Shown here: in pieces, positions 43,475 to 50,964 of the stretch
How positions within the stretch are numbered: position 1 is the first letter of the stretch
How the letters are laid out: each line of letters begins with the position of its first letter
DNA from: Hyaloraphidium curvatum SAG 235-1
Taxonomy: Eukaryota; Fungi; Monoblepharomycota
Assembly (NCBI GenBank): GCA_025558095.1
Contig: JAIVFI010000020.1
Location: forward strand, 620,001-684,000
Length of the DNA: 64,000 nucleotides
Reading direction: 5' to 3'
Notes under the pieces: model-generated
The model's database searches: none
What the model was told of the DNA's origin: nothing
What the model saw: only the letters and a program-made list of their open reading frames with translations
Program-made: the position numbers and the translations under genes

Positions 43475-45758
43475 CTAGAAGAGCAGTCCGCCCGCATCAT
43501 CCCACCGGAAACTCCTTCCACCAGGGAAAGAATATGACCGTGACCAGGAACCACACCGGGCACGCGATGGCGAGCGACCACGCCATGTAGCCGAAGAAGC
43601 TCGGCACGTGGAGCTTGTTCTGGATGGCGATGTTGCGCACGAGGAAGTTGGGCGCGTTGCCGATGTACGTGCTGCGAAGGAAGGGATGCGGTGAGCGGCA
43701 CGTGTGGTGCGTGCGTGGCAAGCGGCCCACTTGGCGCCCATGAACACGGCGCCGGCCGTGATGGCCTGCAGGTAGATAGACTTGGTCGTCATGAGCTCCT
43801 GCGGGTTTCCGCCGGCGACGTTGAAGAAGAGCAGGTACGTCGGCGAGTTGTCGAGGAAGCTGGACAGGCCGCCCGTCACCCAGAAGTACTTGGCCGGGGT
43901 GTCCACGGCGGTGATGATGAACCCAAGCGGGCCCTGCACGCCCTCGTCGAACATGAGTAGGATGGGGACGAGGCAGAAGAAGATGCCGATGAAGAGCACG
44001 GCGACCTCCGTGAATGGTGCCCAGGTGAAGTTGTTGTCGCGGTGCACCTTCTTGGGCGTGAAGAGGAAGTACGAGGCCAGGCCGATGCCGACGAAGATGA
44101 GGTCCCGGCCGAGGGCAAAGTACGACCAGAAGATCGAGTCCGAGGGGGCGGCGGGGTTGGTCATGACCGTGAAGCCCGCGTCGGGGTACGCCTTGACAAG
44201 GAAGCCCGATGCAACGACGAGCGCTTCGTGGACGCGGCGTCAGCTAGCTTGTCGATCAGGGGTATCCTTTCGGAGGCACCCACCGACGACCAAACCGATC
44301 CCCGCGATGTTGATGAACCCGCTGATCCTGAACTTGTCCCCCGCCGACAGCCCCGGCTTGAGCGCCATCCCCACCCGCACCATCATCCGCAGCTTGTGCC
44401 ATCCCTCGACGTACGCCATGGACGGTTTGCGCTCCGGCTCGCCGTGGAACTGCACCTGCGTCGCGGCCGTCGCGGCCGTCGCAACGCTGGCGACGGTGTC
44501 CTTGCGCACCGCGCTGCGGAGGCGCGCCCAGCCTTTGGGCTCCGGGGCGGTTGCGGCCTGCGCGCTTGCGGCCAAGACGTTGCCGGCGTCCTCCGACGTT
44601 GCGACAGCAGAGGGCCCGTTCGTCTCGGCTCCGACCAAGATGCCCCGCGCTTCGGGCGCGGTGCTGTCGGTTCCAAGCTGAGCAGCTTCGCCGGCAACCT
44701 CAGCCTCGGGCGCGACTGTCGGTGGCTCGAGCGACTGCGGCGCCGCGGCGTCGGGAGCGACCCTCTCCCCGTCGCCGTTGGCCTTGAAGTCCCCCTCGAC
44801 TCCCGCGGCCGTGGGGCCCGTCTGGCTCCTGGACGACGCCTTCCCCATCTCCACGTCGCCCCGATCGACAAACGCCACCGACGCCTTCCTCGGCAGGTTG
44901 TACGTGAGCACCGATCCCGTCCTCGGAGGCCCCACGGGCACCGACATGGGCTGGTCGGCGCCGAACACCTCGCTCACGGCGGTCGCGAAGGTCTTTAGCC
45001 GCGTGGGCGCGCGCGGCGTGCTGGTCACGCTGACGGCGTCCGAGTCCCTCCGTCGGCGGGTCTTTGACCTGCGGCTCATCTCCATGTTGTAGAGCACCGT
45101 GTCGAGGATCAGGTAGATGAGGAGGAGGGTGGCGACGGCAAAGAGCATGTGGAAGATGAGGTTGGTCAAGGGCCAGAAAAAGTCGATGCCCTTGAGGAAG
45201 CCCAGGTACACGGGCGGGTCGCCGATGGGGGTGAGCACGCCGCCGACGTTGGAGACGATGAAGATGAAGAAGACGATGGTGTGCACGCGGTGGGTCCGCC
45301 GCGCGAGGGAGCGCAGCACGGGGCGGATCAGAATCATGCTGGTGCCGGTGGTGCCGATGATGGAGGCGAAGATGGCGCCGATTAGGAGGGTGAGCACGTT
45401 CGTCATGGGCGTTCCGTTGCCGGCGCCCTCGATGACCACGCCGCCGGCGGTCACGTAGAGGGCGAAGATTAGGGTCGTGAACGGGATGTACTCGAGAATG
45501 ACGGTATGGAGGACCTCGTAGAGCATTAGCAGGCCTCCGAACTGCACCGCGAACCTGCGGGAGCGCAAGAGATAAGAACCGCAACTCCGAGCCCGTCACG
45601 GGCACCCACGGTATGAGAAACGCCAGCGCACACACGAGCACGAAGGCCCACATCCACTTCTCCCACGTGTGCGGGATCACCAGCGGGCACACGGCGATGC
45701 AGAGCAGCAGCACGACGAACGGTATCCCGTAGGGCAGCGTCACGGGCACGGGGGCCAT
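43475..45758 (-). CDS. Ion-transporter (IT) superfamily protein of the bacterial CitMHS_2 / putative Na+/H+ antiporter type, with a large low-complexity insert
   Basis: IGTTGTSMILIRP, SNVGGVLTPIGDPPVYLGFLKG, YFWVTGGLSSFLDNSPTYL and GAVFMGA.TYIGNAPNF motifs; three introns. Confidence 0.88.
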
Positions 45759-46291
45759 GGTTCGGAGCAAATCCCAAGTCTCTGCAGGCTAGGAGCCGGA
45801 TCCGGAAAGGAAACCAAGCCCGGCGCCGTCCGGGAGCCGCCCGAGGGGAAAGAAGGCGCCCCGACCCGCTGCCGCGCGGCCGCCTTCAGCGAGCGCGCCC
45901 GGGCCGCAAACCGCCTCGGAATGCAGGAGACGGTCTTTTCGGCTCGAGGCACGCCGCGATGGCGGCCCGAACGGCGCGAAAAGCCGCGATGCGGGGGGTT
46001 GTTTACGGGGCGTCCGGCCGAACCGCCGCGCGCAGGGATCGGGCGCTGCCCCCGACGAATGGCGAGAAAAGGCCGCACCATCCCGGACGCAAGGCCAGCG
46101 GCGCTTAACGGATCCCAATGCTTGTACTGTACAGGTATCACACCCGTCGATGAATCTACCCCCGACCGATAAAGATGGCCCCGCGGCGCTACAAAGCCGC
46201 CCCGCCTTCGAGATGACGACGATTCAGGATACAGCCCCCGACCGTCCGGGCCCCGCATGGGAAACCCCGGCCGAAGGCATGAGGAAGCCGC

Positions 46292-47686
46292 TCACTTGCC
46301 CTCCTGCACGGTGGTCGCCGGCGACTCGGCCTCCTCCTTGGCCGCCGCCTTGCCGGGGATCGGGAACGGCAGCGGGGCGCCGATCATCAGCGCGTTCATG
46401 TTGCTGTTGAGCTGCGCCTGCATTGCCGCCTTGTCGAGGTCGGTCATGCCCTCGGCTGTGCGGAGGAACTCGGAGTAGCGCTGCCGGGTGCGCGGTCAGC
46501 GGGCAGGCGGGCGCGGCCACGGCGCGGCGGCCCACCTTCTCCATCACCTCGAGCACCTTCTCCTGCGCGCGGCTGGGGATCACCGAGCCGCAGTTGTCGC
46601 ACCTCCGGGCCTCGCCCTTGAGGGGCTCGCGGCACCAGAAGCACACCTGCACGATGGATTCCTTCTTGCGGTAGAACAGGCCGATGAACTTGATCATGAG
46701 GAAGACGACGATGGCGATGAGGAAGAAGTTGACGATGGACTGCGGAGGGGGATCGGAGGCGGGGCGGGTGGTCGGAGGGGGCCGAGGAGGGGGCGAAAGG
46801 GGCATGCGACGGAAGCGGGACACCGTCAGGACCTCGTCCGGGGTCCGCCGTTCCCCGCACCCACGTTGATGAAGCTACCCCACGCGAGCGTGATGGCCTG
46901 GTCCGCGGTCGCCTGCTGCGGCGTCGGGTAGCTCATGTTGCCCGACAGCCCGGCGCGCATGACGGCGTTGTAGGCCGCCAGGTCCTTGTTCCCCATCAGC
47001 CCGATGATCGGGGAGATCATGTCGTCTACGAGCGAGGTGACGATGGCCGTGAAGGCGTTGCCGATGATGATGCCCACGGCCAGGTCGACGACGTTGCCGC
47101 GGGAGATGAAGGCGAAGAAGTCCTGCGCAAACTCGGACATGCCGCGGAGGGTGTCCATCGCCACGTCGTCCAGGTCGTCGAAGCTGTCGACCTTGGTGAA
47201 CACGTTCGTGGCCTTCTGCACGGTCTGCTTGGTCGAATCGACGACGTCTTTCGGGGAGGGGGACCGGGTCAGCGCGCCCATCCGCGGCCATCACGGGGCG
47301 GACCACCCACGGAGGGCATCGTCCGGCACGAAATCCTCGATCACGACCTTCTCGGGCGCCTTGGGCGACTGCAGCGTGCTGGCGTGCGCGTCGTGGGCGG
47401 CGATGAGCTCGGGGTGGAACATGTCCGACGCCAGGCCGTAGGCCGCGGGTTTGGCCGGCGCGGCGGCGGCGGCGGACGACGAGGCGGCGGTGCCCGCGTC
47501 CGAGATCGGGCTGTCGCCGGCGCCGGCGGCCGCGGGCGCCGCCGATGCGGAGGCCGTCCCTGGCGTCGGCGCGGCCGACGCCGGGAACAGCGCCGGCTTG
47601 CCGGTCTTCGGGTCGAGGATCACCCGCCCGGCATCGTCGAAGCGGTACTCGAAGCCCGCGGGGGGCGGCGGCAGCTCGGCGTCCAT
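46292..47686 (-). CDS. mscL: Large-conductance mechanosensitive channel MscL homolog, copy 1
   Basis: [37 protein letters not shown] (S1/TM1), AWGSFIN|[17 protein letters not shown] (TM2) and CFWC...CDNC; three introns. Confidence 0.92.
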
Positions 47687-49556
47687 CGCGCGCGGGGGCG
47701 GGGGGGAATCGGGCCGCGGACGCGTTTTCCAATCACACAGGGTACTCTGGTTCGGGGCGCACCCCACTCGCCCGGGGAGGGCCGGGGACGCATGGCCGAC
47801 ACCACGATGGGGTGGATCGCCGTCCGATCGCACCGGAATGCAATTATCAGCCCGACATCGGTCTATTCTACCCCGCGGATGCGTCGGAAAGGAGGTCCCT
47901 TGCTGACCTCCCCAGCCCGGCCGCACCGGCCCGCCTCTCGTTCCACCCTGCCGGCCGCCCATCCGCGCCCTGGGGCCCCTCCGACGCCTCCAAGACCACC
48001 GGTTGGCACGTCCCGCCCGGCGGCCACCGGGTCCCGGGACCGGGGAGGCCCGGACGGGCGGTCGGGCGTTGCGGCCTCCTACGGAGGGGCCGAGGTCGTC
48101 CGACCATCGGACGCGAGCCCGGGGGATCGGCTGCCCGGGGAGGCAGGAGACCGGAAGGGGGGCCCGAGGGGCGGGCGCGGGGACGATCGGCGGCGGATGG
48201 GGGGGGGGGCGGGAGGGCCGGGATCCCAAACGGGAAGGTGGGAAGGACAATGCCGCCCGGCCGCGGTCCGCCGGGTTTGCCGGCCGCGGGGGAACCGGAC
48301 GGGGCTCCAAACCGAAATATAATGAGGCGGCGGTCGCGGACCGCCCGTTCCGCGGGTCCGGTGGGCCGACGGGGCGCCGGCGGCCCCGGCAGGGCGTCAC
48401 GTGATAGGGGCGGGCGGGAAGACTCGGACCGTCCATCCGGCCTGCAGACGGCGGGAAAGCGACCCGTATCAGCTTCAGTAACAAAATAATGTGGAATCCC
48501 GGGATTTCCGCCGCTCCGCTGCCCCTCCCTGTCGCGTGGGGCCGGCACGGCGGCACAGACGGCGGCTGACCCGCCGGAAAACCCGCGCGCCATCGCGCGC
48601 TTCCCCGCCGCGATCCGGGCCCGCGACCCGCGCGGACGCCATCGCGACGATGCGGACGGACGGGGGCGATTGCATGCGGTGCGGGGGACGGCGCAGCGGG
48701 GCGGGAGGGACGGCGGCCCGTGTGGCAGGGAGGTCGGGGTGACCATTTCCGCCCGCTTCCTCCGCCGTCCCCGTTCAGGGACAACCGCGATGGAGGCGGG
48801 GAGAAGCGATCTCTGGCCTCCGAGGGCCGGGAAGCGGCGTGCCGTGGGTGGGCGGCACCCCACCCGTCCCGCGCGGGCGGGTGTCGCGGTGCGCCATCCC
48901 TCTCACATTGCGGGAGCCAGGGCCGCGGGATGACCGAGATTCCAGTTCATATTGGCGCGCGACTCATTGGACGGCCTGGAAGCTCGGCAGGCCCGTGAGG
49001 GGCCGGGCAACAAGCGGCGCACGCGGACCGCGACGCTTATCTGAGGACACAGGACCAAGGACGGGCCCGCCCGGCGGGCCATGTCGGCGACGGCAAACAC
49101 CCCGCGGATGCCAGTGTTTTGGCGAACCGGATGCCACGGACAGCGGGGCAGCGGACGACGGCCGTCCCCACCTCTTGTCCGGCCAGGACCCCTACGATCC
49201 CCCTCCTCCTCCCCTCGCCGAGCCGACGGATCGGCGATGTCCCGGCGCTTCAGCCGACGCTCCCGGGACGCGCGGGGCCGGTGATGCCCCGGACGGGCGC
49301 CGATCCGAGCGACAGTGGGGGACGCAAGGCCATCTGATGGGCGGGGGGCCCTGACCTGCGGAGCGCATCGGCGGCACCGGACGTGCATCCCCCGGGCCAT
49401 CCGCAATTTTCGCTTATTGGCAGGACACCCGCGACTGCTTTTTGACCCGCGGCGCCGGGTTCCCGGGCGTCTTTGGGGCGGAGGGTCCCAGGTCCCCTGA
49501 CCAGAGGCGGGCGGCGACGGCTGCTGCGGCTCCGAACTCACCACACCTTTCACGCG

Positions 49557-50964
49557 ATGGCGGGCGAACCCGAGCTGCCGCCGCCGCCTGCGGGCTTCGA
49601 GTACCGCTTCGACGCGGCGGGCAACGTGCTCCTCGACGAGAAGACCGGGAAGCCGGCGCTGTTCGCGGTCGGCGAGGGCGGCACGGTTGCCGCGGCGTCC
49701 GCGCCATCGCCGGCCGCCGCGCCCGCCGCGCCCGATGCCGCCGCCGCCGCCGCGTCGGCCGCCGAGGTCGCCGCGCATCCCGGCGGCGTCGGCGCGCCCG
49801 GCGCCGCGGGCGACCTCGCCGCCATGTTCGCCGCACAGTCCGACGCCGACAACGCAAAGTCGGGCGCCGCCGAGCTGACCGCCGACCCCAACGACGTCAA
49901 GGCGATTCACTTTGTGCCCGACACCGCGCTGCGTGGGTTCCGCACGCCATTGCGCCTGCCGGCGGTGCGGCTGACCCCGTCCCCCGATCCCCCCCCCACC
50001 AGACGTCGTCGACACCACAAAGGGCACGGTCAACAAGACCGTCGACGCCGTGCAGGACATCTTCGACGACCCCACCGACGCCGCCCAGGACGCCCTGCGG
50101 AACATGTCCGACTTTGCCCAGGACTTTTTCAAGTTCATCTCGCGCGGCAACGTGATCGACCTGGCCGTCGGCATCATCATCGGCAACGCCTTCACCGCCA
50201 TCGTGACCTCGCTCGTGGACGACATGATATCGCCGATCCTGGGGCTGATGGGGAACAAGGACCTGGCGGCCTACAACGCCGTCATGCGGCCCGGGCTGTC
50301 GGGGAACACCTCGTACCCGACCCCGGCGCAGGCAAAGGCGGACCAGGCCATCACGCTCGCATGGGGCAACTTCATCAACGTGGGTTGACGTCCCCGGGGG
50401 GGCGAATTCGGTCCCGAAGACCGCGGCTGACCCGTTCCCTCGCCGTCCCGTCTCCTCCCCCCGCCGTCTTCCGTCTCCTCGACCTCCCCGCACCTCCTCC
50501 TTTGTCCTCCCCCACCCAGTCGATCATCAACTTCTTCCTCATCGCCATCGTCGTCTTCCTCATGATCAAGTTCATCGGCCTCTTCTACCGCAAGAAGGAG
50601 TCCATCGTCCAGGTGTGCTGGTGGTGCCGCGAGCCGCTCAAGGGCGACGCCCGTCGGTGCGACAACTGCGGCTCGGTGATCCCCAGCCGCGCGCAGGAAA
50701 AGGTCATGGAGGTCATGGAGAAGGTGGGACCGCCCGTGGCATGCCGGTGCGGGGCAAGCTGACGCCCCGCAGCGCTACTCGGAGCACATCTCCAGCGCCG
50801 AGGGCATGACCGACCTCGACAAGGCCGCGCTGCAGGCCCAGCTCAACAGCAACATGAACGCGCTCATGATCGGCGCCCCGCTGCCGTTCCCGATCCCGGG
50901 CGGGAAGAAGCTCGAGACGCAGAAGACGGCGGCGACGGCGGCGGGCGTGGCGCCGGCCAAGTGA
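49557..50964 (+). CDS. mscL: Large-conductance mechanosensitive channel MscL homolog, copy 2
   Basis: [44 protein letters not shown]|[17 protein letters not shown] and CWWC...CDNC. Introns at about 49933-50002, 50380-50519 and 50724-50772. Confidence 0.92.

Follow-up and report, generated by a model that had tools for sequence, protein, structure and literature searches.

The large-conductance mechanosensitive channel MscL is among the best-understood mechanosensitive channels, but our literature search found neither a current recording nor a localisation nor a clear phenotype reported for its eukaryotic relatives. The characterised osmotic channels of fungi are MscS-like and are tied to the hypo-osmotic response (PMC9367656), and in the literature found fungal MscL-like genes are mentioned in passing only (PMC13463886). 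The MscS-like channels Msy1 and Msy2 of S. pombe and MscA and MscB of A. nidulans are bacterial-type channels that were retained in fungi and they may be functional analogues of fungal MscL; they have been studied experimentally, unlike fungal MscL, and their fold and family are unrelated to it. Here we describe two MscL-type genes, gene A and gene B, that lie head to head in the genome of the freshwater fungus Hyaloraphidium curvatum SAG 235-1 (Monoblepharomycota), in a window of 64,000 nucleotides (nt) that spans positions 620,001 to 684,000 of contig JAIVFI010000020.1 (assembly GCA_025558095.1) and to whose numbering the coordinates of the two genes refer. Probably, one fungal MscL-type gene was duplicated in inverted orientation long ago in this lineage, which gave rise to A and B, and both copies were kept functional.

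The two genes lie on opposite strands and point apart, with 1,870 bp between their start codons (Table 1). Each codes for a protein of about 380 amino acids (aa), and the introns are at homologous positions in A and B, in phases 1, 0, and 0. The donor is GTGGG in 6 of the 6 introns and a CTGAC branch site was found near the 3' acceptor of every one, which is the usual fungal pattern; the G+C content of the window is 66.7%. When the two proteins were compared exon by exon, the identity was 52%, 80%, 94%, and 68% for exons 1 to 4, respectively, and over the first and second transmembrane helices (TM1 and TM2) and a predicted zinc ribbon that follows TM2 it was 90-100%, whereas the introns could be aligned at just 63-68%. 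In a repeat search the inverted-repeat arms were almost wholly exonic (330, 220, 137, and 99 nt long, at 85%, 91%, 89%, and 86%, respectively) and no matching inverted arms were found in the spacer between A and B. Thus, the first-pass annotation of this locus, which had described two full and divergent MscL cores about 1.87 kb apart, with three common intron positions, gtggg donors, near-identical TM1, TM2, and C-terminal tail, and diverged introns and N-terminal linkers, was right on each of these points.

Expression was examined in the contigs of one public run that is presumed to be RNA (X1) and in those of a second study (X2). The X1 contigs skip exactly all six introns, with GT..AG or CT..AC ends and with 0 differences to each copy, and the X2 contigs cover parts of both A and B. 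This shows that A and B are real and distinct genes, the transcripts of which are both present in one sample with correct splicing, and the concern that one copy might be untranscribed, which the first-pass annotation had raised against itself, falls away because both mRNAs are present in X1. Upstream of gene B, X1 contig 5 is collinear with 48590-49932 and is then spliced to 50003, and adapter sequence stands immediately before 48590. No codon-position GC periodicity was seen in 48590-49556, compared to a G+C content at third codon positions (GC3) of 95-97% in the exons, and this stretch appears to be the leader of gene B, read from the plus strand as part of a single transcript, strand and single transcript both being our inference. 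The main X1 contig of gene A ends 28 nt upstream of its ATG. A and B may be controlled differently at the level of translation, considering that B has an apparent leader of about 967 nt with 10 upstream ATGs and that the main contig of A reaches no further upstream than this. RNA cover was weak at 47703-48124 and almost none at 48125-48435, and the poorly transcribed gap is thus about 48125-48589, a few hundred bases rather than 1.87 kb. The spacer of 1.87 kb that had been claimed is therefore correct as the distance between start codons, but most of it is transcribed, as the X1 contig that runs from 48590 into B shows. No Rfam match and no coding signal were found in the spacer and a scan for bacterial-type promoters and terminators gave nothing useful. 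One further X1 contig joins 48387 to 49724, skipping 1,336 nt, with GG..CC ends, 24 letters on one side, and a depth of 33; this junction probably stems from misassembly of GC-rich simple sequence rather than from an intron.

When A and B were searched exon by exon with the Pfam profile MscL (PF01741, cut-off 27.4 bits), exon 2 scored 80.1 bits in gene A and 80.7 bits in gene B over profile positions 2-76, exon 3 of both genes continued the profile at positions 78-100 and added the ribbon motif CxxC-x10-CxxC, and exons 1 and 4 matched no Pfam family. Both copies are thus intact MscL-family genes. In an alignment to solved structures, residues 4-62 of E. coli MscL are matched by exon 2 and residues 82-108 by exon 3. 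At the TM1 gate positions L19, G22, and G26 are kept and V23 is replaced by I, and the RKKE that follows TM2 aligns to the RKKE of E. coli MscL; all of this is the same in A and B. The fold was modelled with AlphaFold2 (AF2) for P0001, a protein of 198 aa that is the closest relative with a contiguous core and is 86% identical to B over the core. The model, with a mean predicted local distance difference test score (pLDDT) of 83.9, shows TM1 and TM2 with a loop hairpin between them and, after these, short ribbon strands and two helices, and its best Foldseek matches were the MscL structures 4y7k (probability 1.00) and 2oar (probability 0.99), with E about 0.02. In the AF2 models of P0001 and of another relative, P0003, the loop hairpin is flanked by two long helices.

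The ratio omega of nonsynonymous to synonymous change between A and B (Nei-Gojobori) was 0.71 in exon 1, 0.32 in exon 2, 0.12 in exon 3, and 0.75 in exon 4. In windows over TM1, TM2, and the ribbon the proportion of nonsynonymous differences (pN) was 0.00-0.06 compared to a proportion of synonymous differences (pS) of 0.13-0.32, so that the core is under strong purifying selection in both copies; the strong selection that had been claimed for both copies is thus borne out for this core. At a GC3 of about 96% pS saturates early and, hence, the sites with an identical residue and different codons were counted. There were 61 such sites out of 268, whereas 86 are expected from the genes' own codon usage, which is 71% of saturation. 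Since the synonymous sites have gone this far towards saturation and the introns can barely be aligned, the duplication is an old one and no recent gene conversion has homogenised the core, the identity of which reflects purifying selection on both copies. With relatives as outgroups, the derived changes in the outer loop were 5 in A and 1 in B, which are small numbers.

That the pair arose in this lineage is suggested by the other members of the family. A Pfam-profile scan of the 31.9-Mb H. curvatum assembly gave at least 8 MscL loci above the cut-off and one more just below it. Besides A and B, there are at least six further MscL-like genes, on contigs 38, 35, 6, 10, 44, and 24 (L003-L008, in that order), with varied N-terminal extensions, and A and B are the sole adjacent MscL pair found in this genome. 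Three H. curvatum proteins in GenBank, KAI9015531.1, KAI9029114.1, and KAI9004542.1, are already named large-conductance mechanosensitive channel. The first of these is P0003, which matches the contig-24 locus L008 at 100% across most exons, while KAI9004542.1 matches none of the loci fetched and may be a further paralogue, in which case the family would possibly have nine or more members. The statement in the first-pass annotation that eukaryotes usually have MscL as one gene is therefore not true of this genome, and as a genomic finding the pair is an ordinary tandem duplicate, its family having been annotated before. Outside the genome two fungal relatives were found in public assemblies. 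L009 is one gene of the same architecture with no divergent partner within 7 kb upstream, and a flanking DnaJ gene has its best matches in chytrids at 31-35% identity. L010 (1-3616 of a 3.6-kb Logan contig of SRR23967301) has three genes of the same MscL subfamily in head-to-tail order. A tree of exon 3 places A and B as sisters, with a support of 99 in the Shimodaira-Hasegawa-like approximate likelihood ratio test (SH-aLRT), and the clade in which they stand (98) also holds the contig-44 and contig-24 paralogues and the two relatives. Because L009 is a single gene, L010 has three copies head to tail, and A and B are sisters in this tree, the head-to-head pair would be a lineage-specific local duplication, and local duplication recurs in the subfamily.

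Some further observations were made on these relatives. The contig-38 paralogue is expressed in the X1 sample, as contigs that branch inside TM1 (50140-50184) carry its sequence. An extra intron directly follows the FISRG codons in L009 and in the closest paralogue, L007 on contig 44, and in L007 a second one follows TM1; A and B have neither, so that introns have been lost or gained within the subfamily. The introns of L010 also differ from those of A and B, being inside TM1 and inside the ribbon with none at the exon 2/3 junction, and a stray piece that resembles the N-terminal module of A and B lies at 815-910 of L010. A metagenome scan with P0001 gave only bacterial MscLs, many of them from gut, with 33-52% identity over the best segment and mostly 34%. 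A word-index search for full-length relatives with the stop-free open reading frame (ORF) 49473-50762 and the exon-3 region found nothing.

Table 1. Positions of the features of genes A and B in the window.
Feature	Position	Strand	Basis
Gene A coding region, 4 exons	46292..47686	-	Translation and splice-site reading; introns confirmed by X1
Gene A exons	47686-47311, 47247-46865, 46739-46536, 46480-46292 (including stop)	-	
Gene A introns	47310-47248, 46864-46740, 46535-46481	-	Each skipped exactly in X1 RNA contigs
Gene A conserved N-terminal module with PPPPAGFEY, about 35 aa	47582..47686	-	79% identical to the module of B
Gene A MscL core, first half (S1 helix, pore-lining TM1, outer loop)	46865..47128	-	Pfam, 80.1 bits
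Gene A TM2 and RKKE charged cluster	46659..46736	-	Profile positions 78-100; exon 3 94% identical to B
Gene A predicted Cys4 zinc ribbon, CxxC-x10-CxxC	46590..46643	-	Sub-threshold Pfam DZR and Zn_Ribbon_1; alignment A1
Gene A conserved C-terminal tail motif	46352..46456	-	Inverted-repeat arm I3, 89%; protein 88% identical to B
Intergenic region between 5' ends, presumed promoters	47715..48589	.	RNA cover
Apparent non-coding leader of gene B, transcribed, about 967 nt with 10 upstream ATGs	48590..49556	+ (strand inferred)	X1 contig 5
Gene B coding region, 4 exons	49557..50964	+	Translation and splice-site reading; introns confirmed by X1
Gene B exons	49557-49932, 50003-50379, 50520-50723, 50773-50964 (including stop)	+	
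Gene B introns	49933-50002, 50380-50519, 50724-50772	+	Each skipped exactly in X1 RNA contigs
Gene B N-terminal conserved module, 37 aa	49557..49667	+	Sequence comparison
Gene B MscL core, first half (S1 helix, TM1, outer loop)	50116..50379	+	Pfam, 80.7 bits; E. coli MscL residues 4-62
Gene B TM2 and RKKE charged cluster	50523..50600	+	Aligns to E. coli MscL residues 82-108
Gene B predicted Cys4 zinc ribbon, CxxC-x10-CxxC	50616..50669	+	Sub-threshold Pfam; alignment A1; P0001 model
Gene B conserved C-terminal tail motif	50797..50901	+	Inverted-repeat arm; counterpart in L009 50% identical

The ribbon of A and B scored 16-21 bits with the Pfam profiles Zn_Ribbon_1 (PF13240) and DZR (PF12773), which is below the cut-offs of 25-27 bits. 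Each of its four cysteines is at least 90% conserved in alignment A1, which has 69 rows, and the ribbon part of the P0001 model consists of short strands with a pLDDT of roughly 80-90 and has a weak Foldseek likeness to RanBP2/NZF fingers (E 0.3-2). For a survey of proteins the best 150 representatives of 10,376 matches were taken together with two cluster members, and in 64 of these 152 proteins, fungal ones such as those of Linnemannia as well as bacterial ones, CxxC-x10-CxxC was found after TM2. Among the bacterial ones are short MscLs such as MHB1604921.1 from a metagenome-assembled genome of Leptospirales (150 aa) and MAA75257.1 of Salinisphaeraceae (154 aa). The short bacterial MscLs that end in the ribbon (P0110, P0170, and others) have 141-154 aa and, besides those of Leptospirales and Salinisphaeraceae, comprise many metagenomic ones. 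Since bacterial MscLs of 150-154 aa have the ribbon, it is a feature of a subgroup of bacterial and fungal MscLs and not a eukaryotic addition. No paper linking MscL with a zinc ribbon was found in our literature search.

The N-terminal module has the pattern PPPPxGFxY, followed by a G-x-V-x-LD..TGKP stretch. In the H. curvatum genome no genes other than A, B, and the contig-44 paralogue were found to have it, apart from the contig-24 gene (KAI9015531.1), in which it is weaker, and elsewhere it was found in L009 and L010; it matched no Pfam family and gave no lead in the protein atlas. In the AF2 model of P0003 it is a small beta unit with a pLDDT of 79-88, and a disordered stretch of about 75 residues separates it from the helices leading to TM1. 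As a ligand of WW (PPxY), GYF (PPG-hydrophobic), or EVH1 (LPPPP) domains the module was rejected because none of these motifs fits all the copies. The tail motif is present in A and B, has a weak match in the contig-44 paralogue, and outside the genome was found only in L009. As judged from this distribution, both the module and the tail motif appear to be specific to the subfamily. The eukaryote-style extensions that had been claimed for the two proteins can thus be upheld for the N-terminal module and the tail, which are lineage-specific, but not for the ribbon, which is common to bacterial MscLs.

To the left of gene A, on the minus strand at 43475-45770, is a putative citrate transport gene in which two exon-sized ORFs matched Pfam CitMHS_2 with 135-218 bits. 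No match to a Na+/H+ antiporter family of Pfam was found there and we found no functional link between this neighbour and the MscL pair.

From the N-terminus each protein would consist of the N-terminal module, a disordered Ala/Pro-rich linker, S1, TM1, the outer loop, TM2, and RKKE, the Cys4 ribbon, and a helical tail with its motif. By homology each is most likely a pentameric, tension-gated channel of large bore that would release solutes upon hypo-osmotic swelling, which would suit a walled freshwater cell; pentamer formation, mechanosensitivity, and location in a membrane are all predicted in this way. A and B differ in the cytosolic linkers, the extreme C-terminus, a few residues of the outer loop, and the 5' leaders. 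As their pores and subunit interfaces hardly differ, the division of labour between them would most likely be a regulatory one, in expression, control of translation, partners, or location, and not one of different gating, and such regulatory subfunctionalisation is likewise predicted. Several points weigh against this account of an old duplication with two functional channels. Our literature search found no functional datum for any fungal MscL, and the sole mention is of an unpublished knockout of a fungal MscL-like gene that had no trap phenotype in the nematode-trapping fungus Drechslerella (PMC13463886). The ribbon of A and B stands between TM2 and the next helices, whereas bacterial MscL runs straight into its C-terminal helix, and because of this placement assembly or gating may differ from that of bacterial MscL. 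The expression data are contigs from a single sample, from which levels and co-regulation cannot be judged, and the leader of gene B is putative as a single transcript from the plus strand. Finally, a tree of exon 2 fails to resolve A and B as sisters and is unresolved inside the subfamily.

Another explanation, which we consider unlikely, is that the two proteins are not osmotic valves of the plasma membrane but organellar channels, of the endoplasmic reticulum (ER), the vacuole, or the mitochondrion, or channels that are regulated through the ribbon and the N-terminal module and act in signalling, for example in Ca2+ entry. The MscS-like channels of fission yeast are at the ER (PMC9367656), and the large cytosolic additions together with the expansion of the family suggest more than a simple valve. 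However, the acidic N-terminus, judged from the sequence by eye, is unlike a typical presequence or signal peptide, and the residues of the gate and of the transmembrane helices are those of canonical MscL.

The first-pass annotation had proposed that A and B form mixed pentamers, or that they are split by life stage or by organelle, and all of these remain speculation. Mixed pentamers are sterically plausible as far as sequence comparison goes, because interfaces made by a TM1, TM2, and ribbon that are so nearly identical should be compatible. That A and B regularly co-assemble, so that the heteromer is the functional unit and its properties are set by the mix of cytosolic parts, is nevertheless improbable in our view. 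Both mRNAs are in the same sample and the two genes diverge around one short untranscribed gap, which would favour it, but near-identical interfaces are equally expected of two homomers that keep the ancestral channel and, with at least 8 paralogues in the genome, a pairing of just A and B is not implied. There is also no conserved pair in the relatives, which have one copy (L009) or three tandem copies (L010), and the very different leaders of A and B argue against strict stoichiometric co-expression. More doubtful still is the idea that the N-terminal beta module, the ribbon, and the tail may make a regulated channel in which A and B co-assemble in variable ratios that are tuned by the gene B leader with its many upstream ORFs. 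If it were true, the threshold of gating would be set in this way or the channel would be tethered to partners in the cytosol, and this would be the first regulated, heteromeric MscL of a eukaryote.

It is very unlikely that the near-identical core results instead from recent gene conversion between the inverted repeats, one copy possibly being redundant. Sequence exchange is possible between inverted repeats at a distance of about 3-4 kb, and the synonymous divergence is indeed lower in exons 3 and 4, where it is 58% and 54% of saturation, respectively, than in exons 1 and 2, where it is 79% and 77%. However, even exon 3 has many silent differences while the protein is fixed (pS 0.245 and pN 0.034), the introns beside the most conserved exons have diverged to the low identity given above, and both copies are intact, spliced, and expressed. 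Gene conversion as the source of the identity of the core was therefore rejected on synonymous divergence. An assembly artefact, that is, collapsed haplotypes or a mis-joined inverted duplicate, has nothing but the symmetry of the locus to suggest it and is practically out of the question, being refuted by the RNA contigs, which match each copy without differences and one of which runs from the spacer into B, with X2 contigs covering both copies too and the copies differing by 9-15% in the exons and far more in the introns and linkers.

An old duplication with both copies retained gives a natural pair with which the fungal additions to MscL can be probed, since A and B have nearly identical pores and different cytosolic parts and leaders. 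The wider leads may outweigh the pair itself, namely that there are at least 8 MscL genes in a freshwater fungus and that the ribbon architecture is common to fungi and some bacteria, and the N-terminal module specific to the subfamily is a further useful lead.

When A and B are compared to bacterial MscL (that of E. coli, 2OAR of M. tuberculosis, and 4Y7K of M. acetivorans), S1, TM1, the outer loop, and TM2 are common to all of them, and the gate motif LAVGxIIG and the RKKE after TM2 are kept in A and B. Bacterial MscL has about 136 aa, whereas A and B have about 380 aa, including a cytosolic N-terminal extension of about 160 aa. Also unlike bacterial MscL, A and B have the Cys4 ribbon inserted after RKKE and then a longer helical tail, and they are spliced nuclear genes with many paralogues in one genome. 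The bacterial MscLs with a ribbon come closer, as their core is followed by CxxC-x10-CxxC at identical spacing and with the conserved A-x-[RK]-C, as in A and B, but they are without the N-terminal extension and the long tail of these, and their first cysteine pair is CP(Y/E)C and not CFWC or CWWC. The annotated fungal MscL-like proteins, OAQ35976.1 of Linnemannia elongata (Gated mechanosensitive channel), KAG0279536.1 of L. exigua, and the KAI entries of H. curvatum, have a variable N-terminal extension, the core, and the ribbon and are encoded by spliced genes, as are A and B. Among such fungal proteins the PPPxG(F/Y)xY module is confined to A, B, the contig-44 paralogue, the two relatives, and, in a weak form, KAI9015531.1.

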